From assembly GCA_965644495.1 (NCBI GenBank), contig CBFFSA010000010.1, positions 620,001-684,000 of the forward strand: a stretch of 64,000 nucleotides of DNA. Direction: 5' to 3'. A model generated the notes under the pieces. It did no database searches. It was not told the DNA's origin and saw only the letters and a program-made list of their open reading frames with translations. The translations under genes were made by a program, and so were the position numbers. Below, piece by piece: positions 4,663 to 64,000 of the stretch (position 1 is the first letter of the stretch; each line of letters starts with the position of its first letter). Source of the stretch: Perkinsela sp. CCAP 1560/9 (Eukaryota; Protista; Euglenozoa: Kinetoplastea).

Positions 4663-5286
4663 CTAGACCTCTCGAAATAAACATCCATTCGATACCGTGA
4701 TGTTTGTACGCCGAACGTCGTAGCTCAAATTCGGACTGCACATTCCCACATCGAACGCACCTTTGAGGTCACTGTTCCAAGACAGCGTCAGCTCGGACAA
4801 ACCTGTTGGAAGTAACGAAAAATCTACGATGCCAAAAAACTGATTGCTTTGAACGTCAAAAACCTCCAATGAAGGTGGAAGTCGCAAAAGGACGAGATTA
4901 CCTGTTAACTTATTGTAATACAGATAAATGTATACGAGAGATGGGGGAAACATCTCTAGTGGAAGTTCACCACGAAGATGGGCTTTCATCACCTCTAGAG
5001 ACTCTAAATTTGGCGGCAAATATTTCCAATTTAACGATCCTAAATCTGCAAAACGCCAGCTTATAGCTTTAACTCGTTTCTTCTCACAACATTCAATGCC
5101 ATACCACTCACAGACAGGTGTGTTGGTGTCCCAGGTACGATGCTTTTTATCTGCGCTTTCAACAAGTCTTGCCAAATTGTATTCTTGCGGTACGGAAACA
5201 GACCTTATTTTCGCTGCCCGGGGATGCGTTGAAGAGTGTACATCCGATGCACGTAGCGGACATATCATTAAAAAGGAGTAAGTCAT
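4663..5286 (-). CDS. LRR-family protein (207 aa); in-frame acidic tail follows the TAG
   Basis: PQEYNL, CEWYGIEC and 23-aa LRRs; the frame continues RDEDDECNDEDSFEND after the TAG. Confidence 0.85.
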   Translation of the reverse strand: MTYSFLMICPLRASDVHSSTHPRAAKIRSVSVPQEYNLARLVESADKKHRTWDTNTPVCEWYGIECCEKKRVKAISWRFADLGSLNWKYLPPNLESLEVMKAHLRGELPLEMFPPSLVYIYLYYNKLTGNLVLLRLPPSLEVFDVQSNQFFGIVDFSLLPTGLSELTLSWNSDLKGAFDVGMCSPNLSYDVRRTNITVSNGCLFREV

Positions 5287-6320
5287 TGAACTTTGAAACG
5301 CTGTAAAGAAATTGGAAGAGGTGTTGAATAAATTGCTCGGTCAAGGGAACTACTGTACCTAGTTATCTGCCGCTTTTTTTTGCGCAATTTCTTTTAAGAA
5401 AAATAAAAAAAAGTATTCTGAAAAAAAGCGTGATGAAAAAAAAATCGGTCTGCTTACGAAAGCAAGGGTAAAAATAATAAAACAAAATACTATACCCCCC
5501 CTGCTTATGAGTTCCCCGGTTTTGAGAAAAAGGAACTCTTAAGCATACCAGATGATAACTGGATCCAAAACAAATATCCGCTCAGTGAACGAACCTGTAG
5601 AGCAGGCTGACGTAGAGTAGAAATTTATGACATTTTGTCACATGTAAAAAAAGGCTTCGCAAAATGTGGGTACAAAAGCATTCACCAGAAAAAGGAACTC
5701 ATAAGCGTACCTGAGTAGGGGGAACTTATAAGCAGGGGGGCATAGTACACGAAATTCAAAAACCTACCATCAAGAGGCTTTTTTAAATGGTTCATTCAGC
5801 TGCTACATTCAGCTGTATTCGCGTGTCTCCATAGGTTGCCAAAAAGAATGAAAGCGCAAAAAACGCTTCATGTGATTCCTTGATGATGGTTGGCATTCTT
5901 TAGAGCGCATAAATTACTTGTTCCAAGTTTTTGGTGATAGAGGCGGGAAAAATGTTGAAAACCCCGTGAATACTATACGCGAATACGTAAATACTACTAA
6001 ATACTATACTACATGAATACGTGAATACTAAAATCAAAGATTTTTTAGGTATACATTACTATCGGACCAGGCCTCGGGGGGCCGATCGTATACCGCGGTT
6101 TCTCGGGACGCCACCCGCAGCCCCTCAAATATCAACTTTTAACAGGAAAATTCGGAGAAGTATTAGTATTTTTCTAATCATTTCTCTAACAGTATCATTT
6201 ATCTAACAGTAATCATTTATCTAACAGTAAACAAGGCCCCCGCCCCTCCAATTTACACAGCCAATCAATCGAATACAATTGAACAATCAATCTAATTGCA
6301 CACATCAAGTACGTACAGGA

Positions 6321-21764: not shown

Positions 21765-21803
21765 AACCATTAAAGATAAAGATACAGTTTCTGTACCTTG
21801 TTG
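21765..21803 (+). other. 39-nt spliced-leader (mini-exon)-like sequence
   Basis: AACCATTAAAGATAAAGATACAGTTTCTGTACCTTGTTG: 39 nt, AAC start, euglenozoan CAGTTTCTGTAC core, TTG end. Confidence 0.8.
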
Positions 21804-23293: not shown

Positions 23294-23752
23294 GTTCATA
23301 CCGGGCGAGCCGGCAGAGCATCTTCCTGTCGTACGACGACCGTTATCAACGGCCATTACAGCGCATTCAACGCCGTTCGTACGCAGGGATTCGGCCTATG
23401 GCCACGCCGCGTGGTCCTCAAGGGAGGTTCTGCAGCGCCTGGGGGGGTGAAGGGGGCACTGGACTTCCACGGCGGGGGGCGTCGTTGAGAGGCTGCAAGA
23501 AGCCTTTCGGCTACGCAGCGTCGTTGAGAGGCTCTCCCCGGCGTCCATCCAGCGGGGGCATTCGGCGCGTCTGACGCGCTTCACGTGAGTGCGAAGCGGC
23601 GGCCCCTCTTCAACGGAAAGATGAGTTTCCGGCCCTAGCACCAGCCGGAAACGGACATACATAAAAGGTTAAGAGTATGCCCGTTTCCGGGAAAAGAAAG
23701 GACGAACTAGGGAAAATGTACCAACAAGGTACAGAAACTATATCTTTATCTT
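23294..23752 (-). mobile_element. SL-headed short structured retroposon, copy B
   Basis: The minus strand begins AAGATAAAGATATAGTTTCTGTACCTTGTTG (SL nt 9-39, one mismatch), then a hairpin homologous to copy A; it interrupts LRR coding sequence. Confidence 0.75.
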
Positions 23753-58233: not shown

Positions 58234-59112
58234 TTACCCTTCCCCTGCACTTTTTATTTCCTCCCTCTCCCGTGTCTCCTCCCCCTCCTCCGCAAACAGC
58301 TCTGTTGCAAACTTCCATCGGTGGGTCTCCCCACTCTTCCTCTTTTCGTCTTCTTTTCGTTGTGCTCTCCCCTTTCCTGGAGGGCCACGTTCTGTTTTAT
58401 CGGGGCTCACGTCTTCACTACGCCCACACCCGAGGGCGGCCATGAGATGTTCCAGGGTTACGGTTTTGCGTTTCCTTGCGGCCGTGACCTCCGCGGCTTG
58501 CTGGGCTAATGTCTCCATCAGGGTGACGACGGCAGCGGTGAGGCACGCGATGGATTCTGGGGTGAGGCGTGTGGCGCGAGGCACGGCGCTTTCCTGCTGC
58601 AGCAGAGCGTGGATCGTGTCGCGGATTTCGGGTGTTGGGGTATTGGTGGGGGGGGTTGGATTTGGACTTGGGCTTGGGTTTGAAATAGAATTCAAGCTTG
58701 GACTTCGATTGGGATATGAAGTTAAGTTTGGATTTGAATTTGAATTTAGGGTTGGATTGGGATTGGGATCTAAGGTTGGATTTGGACTTAAGCTTAACTT
58801 TGTATTTGAATTTAGGCTTGGAATTGGATGTAGATTTGAATTTAGATTTGGATTCGTCTCAGATCGAGGTAGAAGATTTTCTGAAACATCGTCCATAGAA
58901 TCGGGATCTAAAGAATTAGAGCGTGAAACCGAGTCAGGCGTACAGTTGTGTGAAATTTTTGTTGTGGAATGACAAACTGGGCCTTCTTCCGCAGAAAAAT
59001 TGGTTTTTTCAGGCAATATGGAAGAATCGTGGGAAAGAGGAGGGATGGTCAACTCTTGCAGAAATGTGTGGACGAATTTTTGTATGCGTTTTTCCAGTCC
59101 AATGTGTGACAT
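58234..59112 (-). CDS. Histone-fold protein (NF-YB/NC2beta/CHRAC17-like) with Asn/Pro-rich linker
   Basis: IHALLQQE..RLTPESIACLTAAVVTLMETLAQQAAEVTAARKRKTVTLEHLMAAL. Confidence 0.78.
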   Translation of the reverse strand: MSHIGLEKRIQKFVHTFLQELTIPPLSHDSSILPEKTNFSAEEGPVCHSTTKISHNCTPDSVSRSNSLDPDSMDDVSENLLPRSETNPNLNSNLHPIPSLNSNTKLSLSPNPTLDPNPNPTLNSNSNPNLTSYPNRSPSLNSISNPSPSPNPTPPTNTPTPEIRDTIHALLQQESAVPRATRLTPESIACLTAAVVTLMETLAQQAAEVTAARKRKTVTLEHLMAALGCGRSEDVSPDKTERGPPGKGRAQRKEDEKRKSGETHRWKFATELFAEEGEETREREEIKSAGEG

Positions 59113-59465
59113 TGAATGTGTGGGATAGTAAAGGGTGGAAAAATAATGATGGTAAGCAATAAATTAAAATTGATAACCCGTTTCTGAATAATAGGATATG
59201 CTGGTGATTTCTTACCTACTGCATTTTTTACGACAGATGCAAAATTCATCAGTACTCATTGGGGCGCAGAATTCTAAGCGAATAGTATTGCTTGTCGAAA
59301 ATGACGTTTAGAATCATACATAGGTAAGAAGTGTTCATGTTTCTATTCTACACTACGTACTGTGGCCAAGGGTTTGTTACCATTGCGCACGAAACCGATT
59401 AAACAAATAACTAAAAGTATCGACTATCTTTTTTTTCTTTTTAACAAACCTTTGTAGTTTCAAGT

Positions 59466-61919
59466 TTATTCTTTTTTGGAATATTTTTCTGCAAATTCTT
59501 CACAGCAACTCTCCGATTTATGTTGACATAAAATGTCGCGTAGATGGGAAAATTCGTTTTGTAGTTTTTCGTACGAAAGGCTTTGCTTTTGAGCTTTCAT
59601 CCAACGTTCCAGTTGGGTCCCAATGCTCTTGAGTTTTGCGCTGCGCTGATCGCTATCTTTCACAAATTCAGAGGTGTTCTCCAGGAGTGTACATTGTGGC
59701 TTCAACACTGTGGTTTTAAAAACTTTGTAGTTTTCTTGTAAAGGTTGGAGTGTTTTAGTTTTAAAAGAATCCCAACTTGATTCCATCTGGGAAGCGGATG
59801 GAAATTCTTGGAGTACGGTTTTCAGTGATTGCGTCCAAGATTGAGTAGAACGAGAGGAATCGTTTGGTACGTCATTTGTACGGGTCGCGTCTTCCGTGCC
59901 GGGTGCATTGACATCGTTTGTACCTTCTCCTTCACTTGTCAAAGGTGTATTTTTCATATCCGTTTCGGCCTTTGTTGATAGACTGTGGCCTTCCTTTCCC
60001 CGTTTCTCGCCCTTTTCCTCCTGCTCCTCAATTAATTTTTTACAGTCTTCCACAAACGTTTTCCACTTTGGTAGAAACCCAATCGCATCTTCGATTCGCT
60101 GAGAGAATGTTGCTTCCGTGCCTGTTTTTGGATCCTTCTCCTCCCCTGTAATCCCCACACACTGCATTAACGCGTCTTGGGTGTTAACAATTAACTTTAC
60201 CCAAACTTCCTGACACTCACGCAGTACCGATCGAATCTCATCGGACTCACAGATCCAGGAGACACCCAGACGATGGAGCGTGGCTAAATTCTCGGACATA
60301 ATTTCTCCATTTCGGTTGAGTGCTTCCGCAAACTCACGTAGTTGGGTAAAATATTTCGCTTCACTCTTTTCTTCTAAGGAATTTATTCTTATTTCATTTT
60401 CATTTTGTTGTTTTTGTTGCTCTTGTAGAGTGGAAAGATCCACACCCATTTGACGACACCATTGCAACACTCGTTTAGCCTCCGTAAGCAGTAACTCTGG
60501 AGTTGTGGTTGTAGGGTATGCAGGGGAGTCGGGAACAACAAGATGGGTAGGGGAATCCGGAATGATCTGCTGGGGGGTTTCATCGGTTTTGATAGGATTG
60601 ATCTCGTTCTCGGTAAGGTCTTTTTCTTTTAGAGTAGAATTTTCGGAATTCGAGATGGGGGACATGGAGTCAGATGCTAAAGGTATGTCGGGTTTGGTTT
60701 CTTCGCTTTCTTGGCTAATTTTCACACTTCGTACGTTTACGATCGTGTCCTTGACGGTATTTTCTGTTTCAGATTTTTCTTGTTCGAGCTTTTTACTGGA
60801 TTCCACACTACTAACATGTTTTCCCTTCAATTCTACTTCAACTAACGAAATATCTGTTTTTTGCTCGTCTTCCAGAATTTCCATTCGAGATGGCCATCGT
60901 TGTTGTAGTAAACCTTTAACCTCTTCAATAGCCTCACCAGCTCCACACCATTTCGGTAACATATCCCCGTGGGCTTTGACGCGCTCGAATTCGTGAAAGA
61001 AAAACTGAATGCGATTTTTTGCTTTTGTTTCCGGAGATTTGCGGAACGGTGACAGAGGTTGTCGTATGCCTGTGAGATTGTACCCAGAAATCGAGTCCTC
61101 TTCTGGAGCTTTCTCAGGCAACGACGCAATGATTTCAGAAACGTTACCTCGTAGAAGTATGGGGTCATGAGAGGGAGGTGGGGGGTTATTCACTGGAAAT
61201 TCACGCTCAATGGAACCTCGGAGAGTCGCCACTCGGTCATAGAAATGCGAAATTTCAGGGGCTGCAGGGCAAACGAACGTGGGGGTGGATAGCTCGGGAA
61301 CCTCTCCGCTCTTAGAGAGTAAAGTATCCAATAAGATTTGGGATTCTGCGACGTTGGTCGTCCTATCTCCGGGATTTGCATCGTGCAAGTCTGTGGTGTC
61401 TACCTCAGCTATATCCGTCTTTGTATTCGAAATTGTACTTTCTTTTGGACTTTGATGTTCGCCAGCTGGTAAGTTTTGCTCCCTTTCCACGACTACAACA
61501 TCACGATCGACTTTATCTTCACTTTCCTCTCCCTCCTGCTCGCCCTGCACCTGACTAGCTTCCTCTTGTTCCTCCAAGCTCCTCTCTTTTTCTCCAATCT
61601 CTTCCTCTCGAAGAACCCCTTCTTTTTCTTCTTTTTCCTTTTCCATCTTTTTCAGCTCTGTCTCGACCTCTGCCACCACAGTCTCAAACTCTTCTGTGAC
61701 ATTTTCAAATCCTTGAGCAAAGGCCTCGTGCGCCTGTTCCAGCGAGGGGGGAACGAAATACGGACTGTTGTTGTCTTCCTTTTCAAACGGGTGGGCATCG
61801 AGATGGGAAAGCGTTTCCTCGGTGTCCTGGACGCGGAGATGGTGCGCCGTGAGGAGGGCATCCAGGGAGGCATAGGCATGGTGAAGACGAGAAGCAAGAC
61901 GCTCGGAGGAAACCGCCAT
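59466..61919 (-). CDS. 817-aa acidic coiled-coil protein of unknown function
   Basis: Long ORF with E/K-rich helices and a pyrimidine tract before the ATG. Confidence 0.85.
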   Translation of the reverse strand: MAVSSERLASRLHHAYASLDALLTAHHLRVQDTEETLSHLDAHPFEKEDNNSPYFVPPSLEQAHEAFAQGFENVTEEFETVVAEVETELKKMEKEKEEKEGVLREEEIGEKERSLEEQEEASQVQGEQEGEESEDKVDRDVVVVEREQNLPAGEHQSPKESTISNTKTDIAEVDTTDLHDANPGDRTTNVAESQILLDTLLSKSGEVPELSTPTFVCPAAPEISHFYDRVATLRGSIEREFPVNNPPPPSHDPILLRGNVSEIIASLPEKAPEEDSISGYNLTGIRQPLSPFRKSPETKAKNRIQFFFHEFERVKAHGDMLPKWCGAGEAIEEVKGLLQQRWPSRMEILEDEQKTDISLVEVELKGKHVSSVESSKKLEQEKSETENTVKDTIVNVRSVKISQESEETKPDIPLASDSMSPISNSENSTLKEKDLTENEINPIKTDETPQQIIPDSPTHLVVPDSPAYPTTTTPELLLTEAKRVLQWCRQMGVDLSTLQEQQKQQNENEIRINSLEEKSEAKYFTQLREFAEALNRNGEIMSENLATLHRLGVSWICESDEIRSVLRECQEVWVKLIVNTQDALMQCVGITGEEKDPKTGTEATFSQRIEDAIGFLPKWKTFVEDCKKLIEEQEEKGEKRGKEGHSLSTKAETDMKNTPLTSEGEGTNDVNAPGTEDATRTNDVPNDSSRSTQSWTQSLKTVLQEFPSASQMESSWDSFKTKTLQPLQENYKVFKTTVLKPQCTLLENTSEFVKDSDQRSAKLKSIGTQLERWMKAQKQSLSYEKLQNEFSHLRDILCQHKSESCCEEFAEKYSKKE

Positions 61920-62261
61920 GAAAAACAGGGAGAAAAGGGAAGGGGAAAAAACTATTATTCTTTGTTTTTTACTTCTTAATTACTCAAGCGGGGATGTGCG
62001 CCAATAAAGCTAGGCTCTACACTGTATACAAAAATAAAAAAGTACTGTTACCCCCTCCCTTTATACTTCCGCAGGTTTCAGTGCTTTTGGAAGTATAAAG
62101 GGAGGGCTTGAATTTTCGAAAAATACGCGAAAGAAATGTTTTTGAAAAGGGGGAAAAAGAAATTAGCCAAAAGCCAATCCTCTAATCTCCAAACATGCGG
62201 GCACAATCTTTGTTTTCGTGTGCGTCTTGTAGACAATCAACGTACCGTGTACACTAGTGAC

Positions 62262-62292
62262 TTCCGTACCTTGTTGTTTCTGTACCTTGTTG
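62262..62292 (+). other. Tandem spliced-leader relics
   Basis: TTCCGTACCTTGTTG then TTTCTGTACCTTGTTG, followed by ACTTTTTCC as in copy A. Confidence 0.75.
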
Positions 62293-63653
62293 ACTTTTTC
62301 CAGGTAAAAAAATTTTGATGCCTCAGTCGGCGCAGGAATCGCCTTGCAGAAAATGTCCGCGCAGTCACTTTCCTGTAGCACTCGCATAGAATCCTATGAA
62401 TCGCCTGCAAAGGTCAGTACTAAAAACTCAACTTTGCGAGAAATTATTATTATCGCGAGAGTAGCATCCTGTTTTTATCGTTAATGGTACGCGGCGTCGT
62501 AAGGACTCGCCGACTTCGGCACTAAGAACTTCGCATGGAAATTTTGGGCGAGAAGCCATGGAGCGGCTTGTGGGGGGGTATGGGAAGACGACACGACCAC
62601 GGAGTATCCATTCCCACATAAAGATCTTGAATATTTTCGTGTAAGCATTGTTGCGGTGTTCTCCAGGAAGAGAACGTAGGAAACATGATACAGAGTCTAG
62701 AAGGCGGACGGCCGCTGCCTCTAGTGTCTGATAGTCTCACTCCCTAGATGGGGGAAGGGCACAGTATGCAGTAAAAGATACTGCAAAGGAAAAGCGTAAG
62801 TGGTTACATTCCATGGTCGCACGAGCCCACGATAAAATTACTACTACTATGAATGTACAGGACCAATTCGCAAAATTAGGTTACTTGAACCCTGCACTTG
62901 CCCAGTTCCACTCTCCAGAGCTATAAATTCCTACAGTCCGCGTGCATCAGCACAAGATTATGATTTCCCAGCAGTTTCAACGCGGCGCACAGTCGGGAAA
63001 TAGAACCCGAAACAAAGCGTCAAGAAAGCAGCACACAAGTAGTGATCAAGCGGAAAGATGAAACTGAAGTCTAAGATCCAAGAAGCAAGTTGAAAAGAAA
63101 CATAAAGTTAAACGATAAGATGAACGGTATAAACCACCAACGAGTAAGTGACCCCCATTTTTTTCGTACAGGGGGTGTAGGGGGTGTTTTGTAATGCAGA
63201 GATATTTGTACCTCCAGAGATATTTAGGCCCAGCAGTAGTAGGCGCAATGAGTTGTTTGCTGGAATCGAGGACTGGGCTTTGTTTCACGAGTCGTCCGAC
63301 GATACTTATTCCGATACTGGAATCAGCAACAGCGAGGCAAAGCGCCTTGTTTCACTCCGTCGATCAGCGAATGCATGGAACAAGCGTGTTCGCACTACAG
63401 ATGACGGTATGCAGTCTCGAGAAGATGTTGATCTTCTTACCAAGCGAGCAGCTGTTGAAGCAGCGTCATGCATGTTGTCGACCTCGACTTCATCCAACAA
63501 TACCGCGAAACCCATCATTATTAGAGGAAGCTCATTATCTCGAATGGAATTTCGGCCTGAATAGCTCGACACAAATTTGTCTACTTCGTTAACGCATCTT
63601 ACGGCATTGTGCTTTCGCAAATTGATGCAGTTGAAAGATTATTCTCCTTGGGA

Positions 63654-63801
63654 TATACATATAAATATAAACATAATACATATAAATACATATAAATATA
63701 TATAAATATACATATTTATATGAAAATAAAACATATTTATATAAAACATATTTATATGAAATACATATACAAAAATAAATATATACATATTTATATGTAT
63801 T
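63654..63801. repeat. AT-rich degenerate microsatellite
   Basis: ATATACATATAAAT-type repeats. Confidence 0.85.
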
Positions 63802-64000
63802 AGGCTGACAACTGAGGGGGGTGCTTCGGGGGAGCATAAATCAATCGGAGCTTAACTCTCCTACTAGCGATTGCGTTTAGCGACGAATGTGAAGAAATGC
63901 AAGTAGGTCATTCGGGAGAACGCGATATGACCGAATTTAATGTCGATGGACTTCGGGATTTTCCCAACGACCAATAAATAATCCCGATATTTGATGTGCA

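Follow-up and report, generated by a model that had tools for sequence, protein, structure and literature searches.

Organisms of the kinetoplastid type trans-splice every mRNA, and in trypanosomatids the CRE/SLACS/CZAR retrotransposons lie between nt 11 and 12 of the spliced leader (SL) RNA genes and are accompanied by a long target duplication. Chimeric retro-pseudogenes of the U6/L1 type arise by template switching and contain the whole small RNA to its own 3' end. Dinoflagellate relict SLs on recycled cDNAs were reportedly described by Slamovits and Keeling in 2008. An earlier note on the DNA studied here held that the signature of such recycling is known from dinoflagellates, and relict and tandem SLs are indeed documented in that group: the relict SLs of dinoflagellate retrogenes are recycled cDNAs (PMC5585692, PMC6050394, PMC12014239), and the tandem-SL genes of Fugacium kawagutii provide a one-step route to mRNAs with several SL units (PMC6616646). 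In the literature, including a literal text search for the last 16 SL bases, no report of SL relics in kinetoplastid DNA was found, which with incomplete coverage is absence of evidence only.

The window, by which we mean the whole stretch of 64,000 nucleotides that was analysed, contains on its plus strand a doubled SL relic (62261-62301). The outer unit (62261..62276) corresponds to SL nt 23-38 with two mismatches, both T>C (CTTCCG for TTTCTG), and is the more diverged of the two; the inner unit (62277..62292) is an exact copy of SL nt 23-38 and begins with the base that comes directly after the AG in the SL. The nine bases that follow (ACTTTTTCC, 62293..62301) equal the start of the body of an SL-headed structured repeat (GTACTTTTTCC...) minus GT, and here the homology stops. 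The genuine SL is encoded by two tandem SL RNA genes on contig C1 with a period of 297 bp. Its exon (L103:1117-1154, minus strand) is 38 nt long and ends in the 16 bases that make up the relic units (SL nt 23-38, hereafter U16); behind it come GTATGAG, with the GT donor directly after nt 38, then two stems and a T run. GATACAG stands directly 5' of U16 in the SL RNA gene, with an AG at nt 21-22 (AG22), and a second AG lies within the SL at nt 15-16 (AG16). The claim of the earlier note that two SL units stand head-to-tail, the second beginning at the base after the internal AG of the SL, is thus borne out, and AG22 is present in the genuine SL at the very position on which the claim depended. 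A metagenome contig (Ga0316204_10168667, positions 1-100; L122) from an environmental relative carries an identical 38-nt SL with its donor behind another upstream region; this match is a normal SL gene of a relative, and its exon is not doubled.

Contigs of two independent DNA read sets span the tandem unchanged, and it is therefore real DNA and no assembly artefact: run X3 supplies one of 3.9 kb (59001-62866) and run X5 another (62171-62325), and neither shows a difference inside the tandem. The 20-nt word across the junction has eight exact copies and one copy with one mismatch in the 21-Mb genome, and its reversed control has none. Upstream of the tandem no trace of SL nt 1-22 was found and the sequence is unrelated; the outer unit is read here as what would be the surviving 3' part of a later-added SL. 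No poly(A), target duplication or long ORF was found at the locus, where nine bases of the body remain, and what is left is likely a dead, decayed fragment of 40 bases that has no function.

Searches of the whole window and of 61900-64000 against Rfam gave no SL RNA or other family at the relic locus, and none was found in a search for tRNAs. The nearest gene lies on the opposite strand and starts at 61919, and coverage by run X1, which is possibly RNA, is limited here to 59289-61861, which is the neighbouring minus-strand gene. A perfect hairpin with 18-bp arms occupies 62041-62109, and many short contigs of three DNA runs match it at high depth; it is probably a multi-copy, MITE-like palindromic repeat, and its matches in Rfam are chance miRNA-like ones only. 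The earlier note had also observed that the 1.3 kb 3' of the relic differs from the single-headed structured repeat copy A, which is correct, and had proposed that it could be a decayed retrocopy or a partner element. The latter suggestion did not hold up: by blastn and tblastx against the genome 62293-63650 is unique apart from an unrelated repeat of 390 bp, and it matches none of the fetched SL-headed units at the DNA or protein level, so that this identity was dropped. The repeat in question (62741-63131, about 390 bp) has copies of 71-76% identity at C20:82358-82819 and C5:764315-764786 and short pieces of 92-97% identity on C9, and it is not related to the SL relic. At about 62551-62649 on the minus strand there is a weak tblastx match (51% over 33 aa) to the ORF of a retroelement family with proteins that start with M.PFTP, which may be a decayed fragment in an orientation opposite to that of the relic.

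The relic is one of many. U16 is present in 611 exact copies genome-wide, the 19-mer that contains the AG in 655 copies at up to two mismatches, and SL nt 3-38 in 232 exact copies, many of them within a few bases after a poly(A) run. A start at nt 3 is as expected for cDNAs of capped SL-RNAs that stop at modified cap nucleotides. Most of the nt 3-38 copies examined head retroelements with an R2-like reverse transcriptase; locus L102, for example, has a triple head, an ORF1, an ORF2 of 1018 aa with a reverse-transcriptase domain whose closest solved structures are R2 proteins, and a poly(A) tail. The outer boundary of the relics is bimodal, falling at nt 1-5 or at about nt 21-24, the latter in about 10% of the single relics on C1 and in one third of the doubled heads. 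A common inserted element whose end would coincide with the start of the nt 23 relics was considered and rejected, as the upstream flanks of these relics are unrelated (L052-L113).

The SL RNA itself is also retro-copied. The exon-intron junction (SL-GTATGAG) occurs only about seven times in the assembly, and beyond the two SL genes the fetched junctions are dispersed unspliced SL RNA copies with A-rich tails, which are retropseudogenes. Five of these (L117-L121; C2:801400, C20:10740, C25:23730, C49:34180 and C86:11850) contain the exon from about nt 3-6, the intron and an A-rich tail, and one SL RNA retropseudogene stops short inside the intron.

Two further observations concern the neighbourhood of SL copies. 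At L101 (C1:2477500-2483000) SL nt 3-38 lies within a 5092-bp tandem array, at about 95-205 and about 5185-5295, and stands between the two copies of a 34-nt direct repeat that belongs to the 5' UTR of the gene itself, the upstream one being preceded by AG; this arrangement suggests that a cDNA was patched with its 5' end into its own gene. At L123:2918-3718 (C10:158717-159517, minus strand) an ORF for a transposase of the Tc1/mariner type with DDE_3 and HTH_Tnp_Tc3_2 domains adjoins an SL-headed retroelement.

The locus and the genome around it share much with the dinoflagellate system. In both, DNA copies of the organism's own SL stand at the 5' ends of retro-copied units, in an abundance that is similar in kind, and in both there are tandem partial SLs whose inner unit starts after an SL-internal AG. 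At the window locus the unit is part of the genuine SL, the inner unit starts after the AG and the outer unit ends exactly at the SL 3' end; a retrocopy body beyond nine bases, poly(A) and target duplication are absent from it, and a head, a reverse transcriptase ORF and poly(A) are found together at L102. Unlike in dinoflagellates, the SL here is of the 38-nt kinetoplastid type, the carriers examined are mostly retrotransposons and non-coding repeats and not host genes, the commonest tandem form is not joined at AG, and a second outer boundary at about nt 23 is preferred. The resemblance to CRE/SLACS/CZAR lies in an R2/CRE-like reverse transcriptase and in elements physically associated with SL sequence, but here a complete SL exon is fused to the 5' UTR of the element at dispersed loci, and at the window locus there is neither GTATGAG nor an element between the units. 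As in the U6/L1 chimeras, a small nuclear RNA sequence precedes a 5'-truncated retrocopy, and retropseudogenes of the SL RNA are present; in contrast to these chimeras, the left unit ends at the splice donor and consists of the exon only.

The carrier of the window relic is most likely a member of the structured repeat family, of which the relic would be the broken 5' end, retro-copied as a mobile element. In this repeat, roughly 0.55 kb long, SL nt 12-38 form the head; GTAC(A/T)TTTTCC comes next and leads into some 520 nt of body, which is rich in GC and in hairpins and ends near GCATGA. Two copies with a single U16 head are present in the window: copy A (21788..21803, plus strand), preceded by GATACAG, and copy B (23722..23737, minus strand), preceded by GATATAG. 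The window relic matches the repeat in the head and in the first nine body bases, with GT missing and the rest absent. As the earlier note had remarked, ACTTTTTCC matches copy A (GGACTTTTTCC after 21803); the same 9-mer stands 3' of the head at C1:4017995 (L061) and at L016, and its chance frequency is about 6e-5, given the T-rich composition after relics.

The best relative of the window relic is the copy at C1:4017995, a full-length member whose double head agrees with that of the relic in 38 of 40 bases and leads into GTACTTTTTCC. Over about 560 nt this copy shares about 99% of its body sequence with the single-headed copy L016, and both flanks of the two copies are unrelated, which makes them separate recent insertions. 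They look like a parent-offspring pair. In the head they differ only in that the 3' end of a new SL stands in place of nt 13-22, the switch coming exactly at AG22. Such a head is what would be expected from SL addition at the internal AG followed by 5'-truncated reverse transcription, and it would be hard to obtain from a local duplication or from a compound donor. Copies of the repeat at L104 (C1:4017500-4019500) and L016 lie inside leucine-rich-repeat coding sequence. Excision of GTAC...AG (510-539 nt), from a donor at the SL exon/intron boundary to an acceptor before YGCATGA, keeps the frame open with LRR motifs on both sides, and these copies would by this arrangement behave like introners; five other copies of the structured repeat lie outside open frames.

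These comparisons suggest a simple origin for the window relic. A copy of the structured repeat with a head of SL nt 12-38, in which the AG at nt 21-22 was retained, would have been transcribed, and a fresh SL would have been trans-spliced onto this AG to give an RNA composed of a full SL, U16 and the element body. A reverse transcriptase, probably from the R2/CRE-like elements that fill the genome, would have copied this RNA, and the cDNA, 5'-truncated within the new SL, would have integrated at 62261. The body would later have been lost after nine bases, and the outer unit would have gained two substitutions. The sequence, the position of the AG, the recurrence of the junction, the exact SL 3' end to the left of each junction and the parent- and offspring-like copies are observations, whereas we infer that an SL was trans-spliced at the AG, that the RNA was reverse-transcribed and that the body was deleted later. 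Addition of an SL at the internal AG with subsequent reverse transcription is the best explanation that we can offer for the window relic, and we give it a probability of about one half. In its favour, the AG stands immediately before U16 in the genuine SL, junctions are found after both SL AGs, and the units with an SL head have a terminal poly(A) and a reverse transcriptase that comes nearest to R2 proteins. Against it, AG and the SL both end in G, and a junction at the AG is thereby indistinguishable from a microhomology of 1 nt; a pyrimidine tract is missing before AG22 within the relic; and the class joined after CTG is the commonest, the outer unit is the more diverged, and the locus has neither poly(A) nor a target duplication.

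The earlier note had envisaged two rounds of trans-splicing and retroposition. The splicing part of this idea is supported by the position of the AG, by the recurrence of the junction in eight families together with the use of AG16, by the hundreds of SL-headed retrocopies in the genome, and by the copy at C1:4017995. Two rounds of retroposition need not be assumed: since the inner unit belongs to the inherited head of the structured repeat, one SL addition and one retro-copying suffice, and an RNA with two leaders or a tandem-SL donor would yield an identical product.

The note had proposed a count of single, double and triple relics, and a census was made of doubled heads, defined as two copies of the last ten SL bases (U10) within 30 bases, all contexts of which were fetched and grouped by their downstream sequence. 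The search gave 56 matches at 50 loci. A direct repeat of U10, in which the SL end is joined to nt 29 after CTG, is seen in 21 families; a repeat of U16, joined to nt 23 after AG22 as in the window, in eight (seven if the window relic and C1:4017995 are counted as one family); and a 22-nt unit, joined to nt 17 after AG16, in one. In the remaining heads the units are separated by 1-19 additional bases, such as G, AA, GG, AG or GCCG. SL + U16 + U10 heads are found at three loci, and three U10 units at one. Among the families whose junction is clean, about 30 in all, only nine have an AG there. In essentially all of the 56 doubled heads the left unit stops at the exact SL 3' end, other ends being confined to irregular heads; a splice junction predicts this, and free slippage does not. 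The junctions with extra bases fit splicing to an acceptor just 5' of an older relic.

The note had held that variable junctions among tandem units elsewhere, as from slippage duplications, would count against its reading, and here the result is divided, with 21 families joined after CTG and further heads with extra bases on one side, and the recurrence of AG22 in eight families on the other. A relic variant with TTTCAG, which would create an AG and could explain the U10 class, was sought genome-wide and is absent. The CTG-joined class hence requires at least one AG-independent process that also builds tandem heads, and such a process could have made the window tandem too. In our view the U10 class, with its uniform junction on many unrelated families, would best be put down to a donor RNA in which 10 nt are duplicated or to a relaxed choice of the acceptor. 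An identical SL + 16 + 10 triple head is present on two diverged retrotransposon subfamilies. In a family of elements with the AATTATTTCCCC-UTR (e.g. C1:1443116, C2:657558 and C43:6786), 15 of the 16 exact copies are SL-headed at the same base and one is preceded by TTC; an SL-less master copy with an AG acceptor was sought for this family in the assembly and none was found, no copy being preceded by AG. The triple head shared by two subfamilies, together with this largely SL-headed family that lacks an AG, suggests a renewal of heads in register, whatever its mechanism, which also speaks against the preferred origin.

An unlikely but by no means far-fetched alternative is that there was one round only, from an RNA that already carried two leaders, either from a tandem-SL donor (a variant SL RNA gene, or SL RNA itself trans-spliced at AG22) or by addition of a second SL to a mature SL-mRNA, followed by one reverse transcription. 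Identical compound heads on unrelated or diverged families (21 for the 10-nt unit, eight for the 16-nt unit and two subfamilies for the triple) are what such an RNA would give, the non-AG class would call for no unusual splicing if 10 nt were duplicated in the donor, and tandem-SL genes have been described in the dinoflagellate Fugacium together with the same alternative reading (PMC6616646). Only two canonical SL RNA genes are assembled, and the array may be collapsed with variants hidden. On the other hand, SL RNA genes with a doubled exon were sought in the assembly and none was found; the canonical genes are single-headed and the SL intron does not come after any of the 56 assembled tandem heads, in both of which this genome differs from that of Fugacium kawagutii. 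The junctions with extra bases would moreover require many different donors, and at C1:4017995, where the inner unit is continuous with the inherited head, a compound donor would have had to be spliced at a non-AG site.

We regard it as rather improbable that the tandem was formed during reverse transcription. R2 enzymes are known to jump between templates, and an R2-like enzyme that copies an SL-bearing RNA might realign on this or another SL through a microhomology of 1-2 nt (G or TG) or make an end-to-end jump, and would thereby double the 3' part of the SL. The reverse transcriptase here is R2-like, all exact junctions come after G, and the frequency decreases with the length of the unit, from the 10-nt unit with its TG microhomology to the 16-nt and the 22-nt units, 28-nt units being absent. 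Short fillers such as G, AA, GG and AG look like the untemplated bases that template jumps leave behind, and irregular heads with 3'-truncated units exist. Microhomology alone, however, does not predict the exact SL 3' end on the left in essentially all cases, and a 7-nt unit, equally favoured by the same TG, is seen once against about 30 cases of the 10-nt unit, while end-to-end jumps would need free SL exons as well as RNAs starting at nt 17, 23 or 29.

Very little speaks for a doubling of a single 16-nt relic in situ, after insertion, by replication slippage or unequal exchange. The locus does consist simply of two U16 units and lacks SL nt 1-22 upstream; single relics from about nt 23 are common, and a few loci, such as L055, L065 and L082, have slippage-like arrays of several units, partial ones included. 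But the flanking microhomology is just 1 nt, the identical junction recurs in eight families at unrelated loci, no duplications in a shifted register were seen, and the double-headed copy at C1:4017995 is a separate insertion. Simple slippage of the minisatellite kind would give variable registers set by microhomology, and here the left boundary is fixed at the SL end. That the relic is the target-site duplication or footprint of an SL-specific element (CRE/SLACS/CZAR-like or of the recombinase type) that entered and left can practically be set aside, for although the reverse transcriptases here are R2/CRE-like and some heads resemble an element inserted in the SL at about nt 31-32, the units directly adjoin each other, an SL intron and the context of an SL gene are missing, the junction lies elsewhere than at nt 11/12, and excision is foreign to retrotransposons.

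Beyond SL addition at the internal AG as the preferred origin of the window relic, it is tempting to speculate that SL relics serve as reusable landing sites, where promoter-less retroelements would regain a capped leader generation after generation through splicing inside an old relic or at its end, though we consider this a doubtful proposition. It is just as speculative that the same holds for non-AG (UG) sites such as CTG/TACC and TTG/UTR (the slash marks the junction), with single, 10-, 16- and 22-nt heads recording the site that was used. If true, it would mean a choice of the 3' splice site in trans-splicing that is relaxed or guided by the relic.

The SL-relic signature has been regarded as a peculiarity of dinoflagellates, and here there are hundreds of relics in a genome of the kinetoplastid type. 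Their doubled heads provide a handle on how often, and at which site, an SL is added to an RNA that already bears one. If the internal AG is indeed used, mobile elements would propagate by way of the mRNA-capping pathway of the host and their heads would count successive SL additions, and the surplus of junctions without an AG, like the preferred relic boundary at nt 23, would bear on how the 3' splice site is chosen in trans-splicing.
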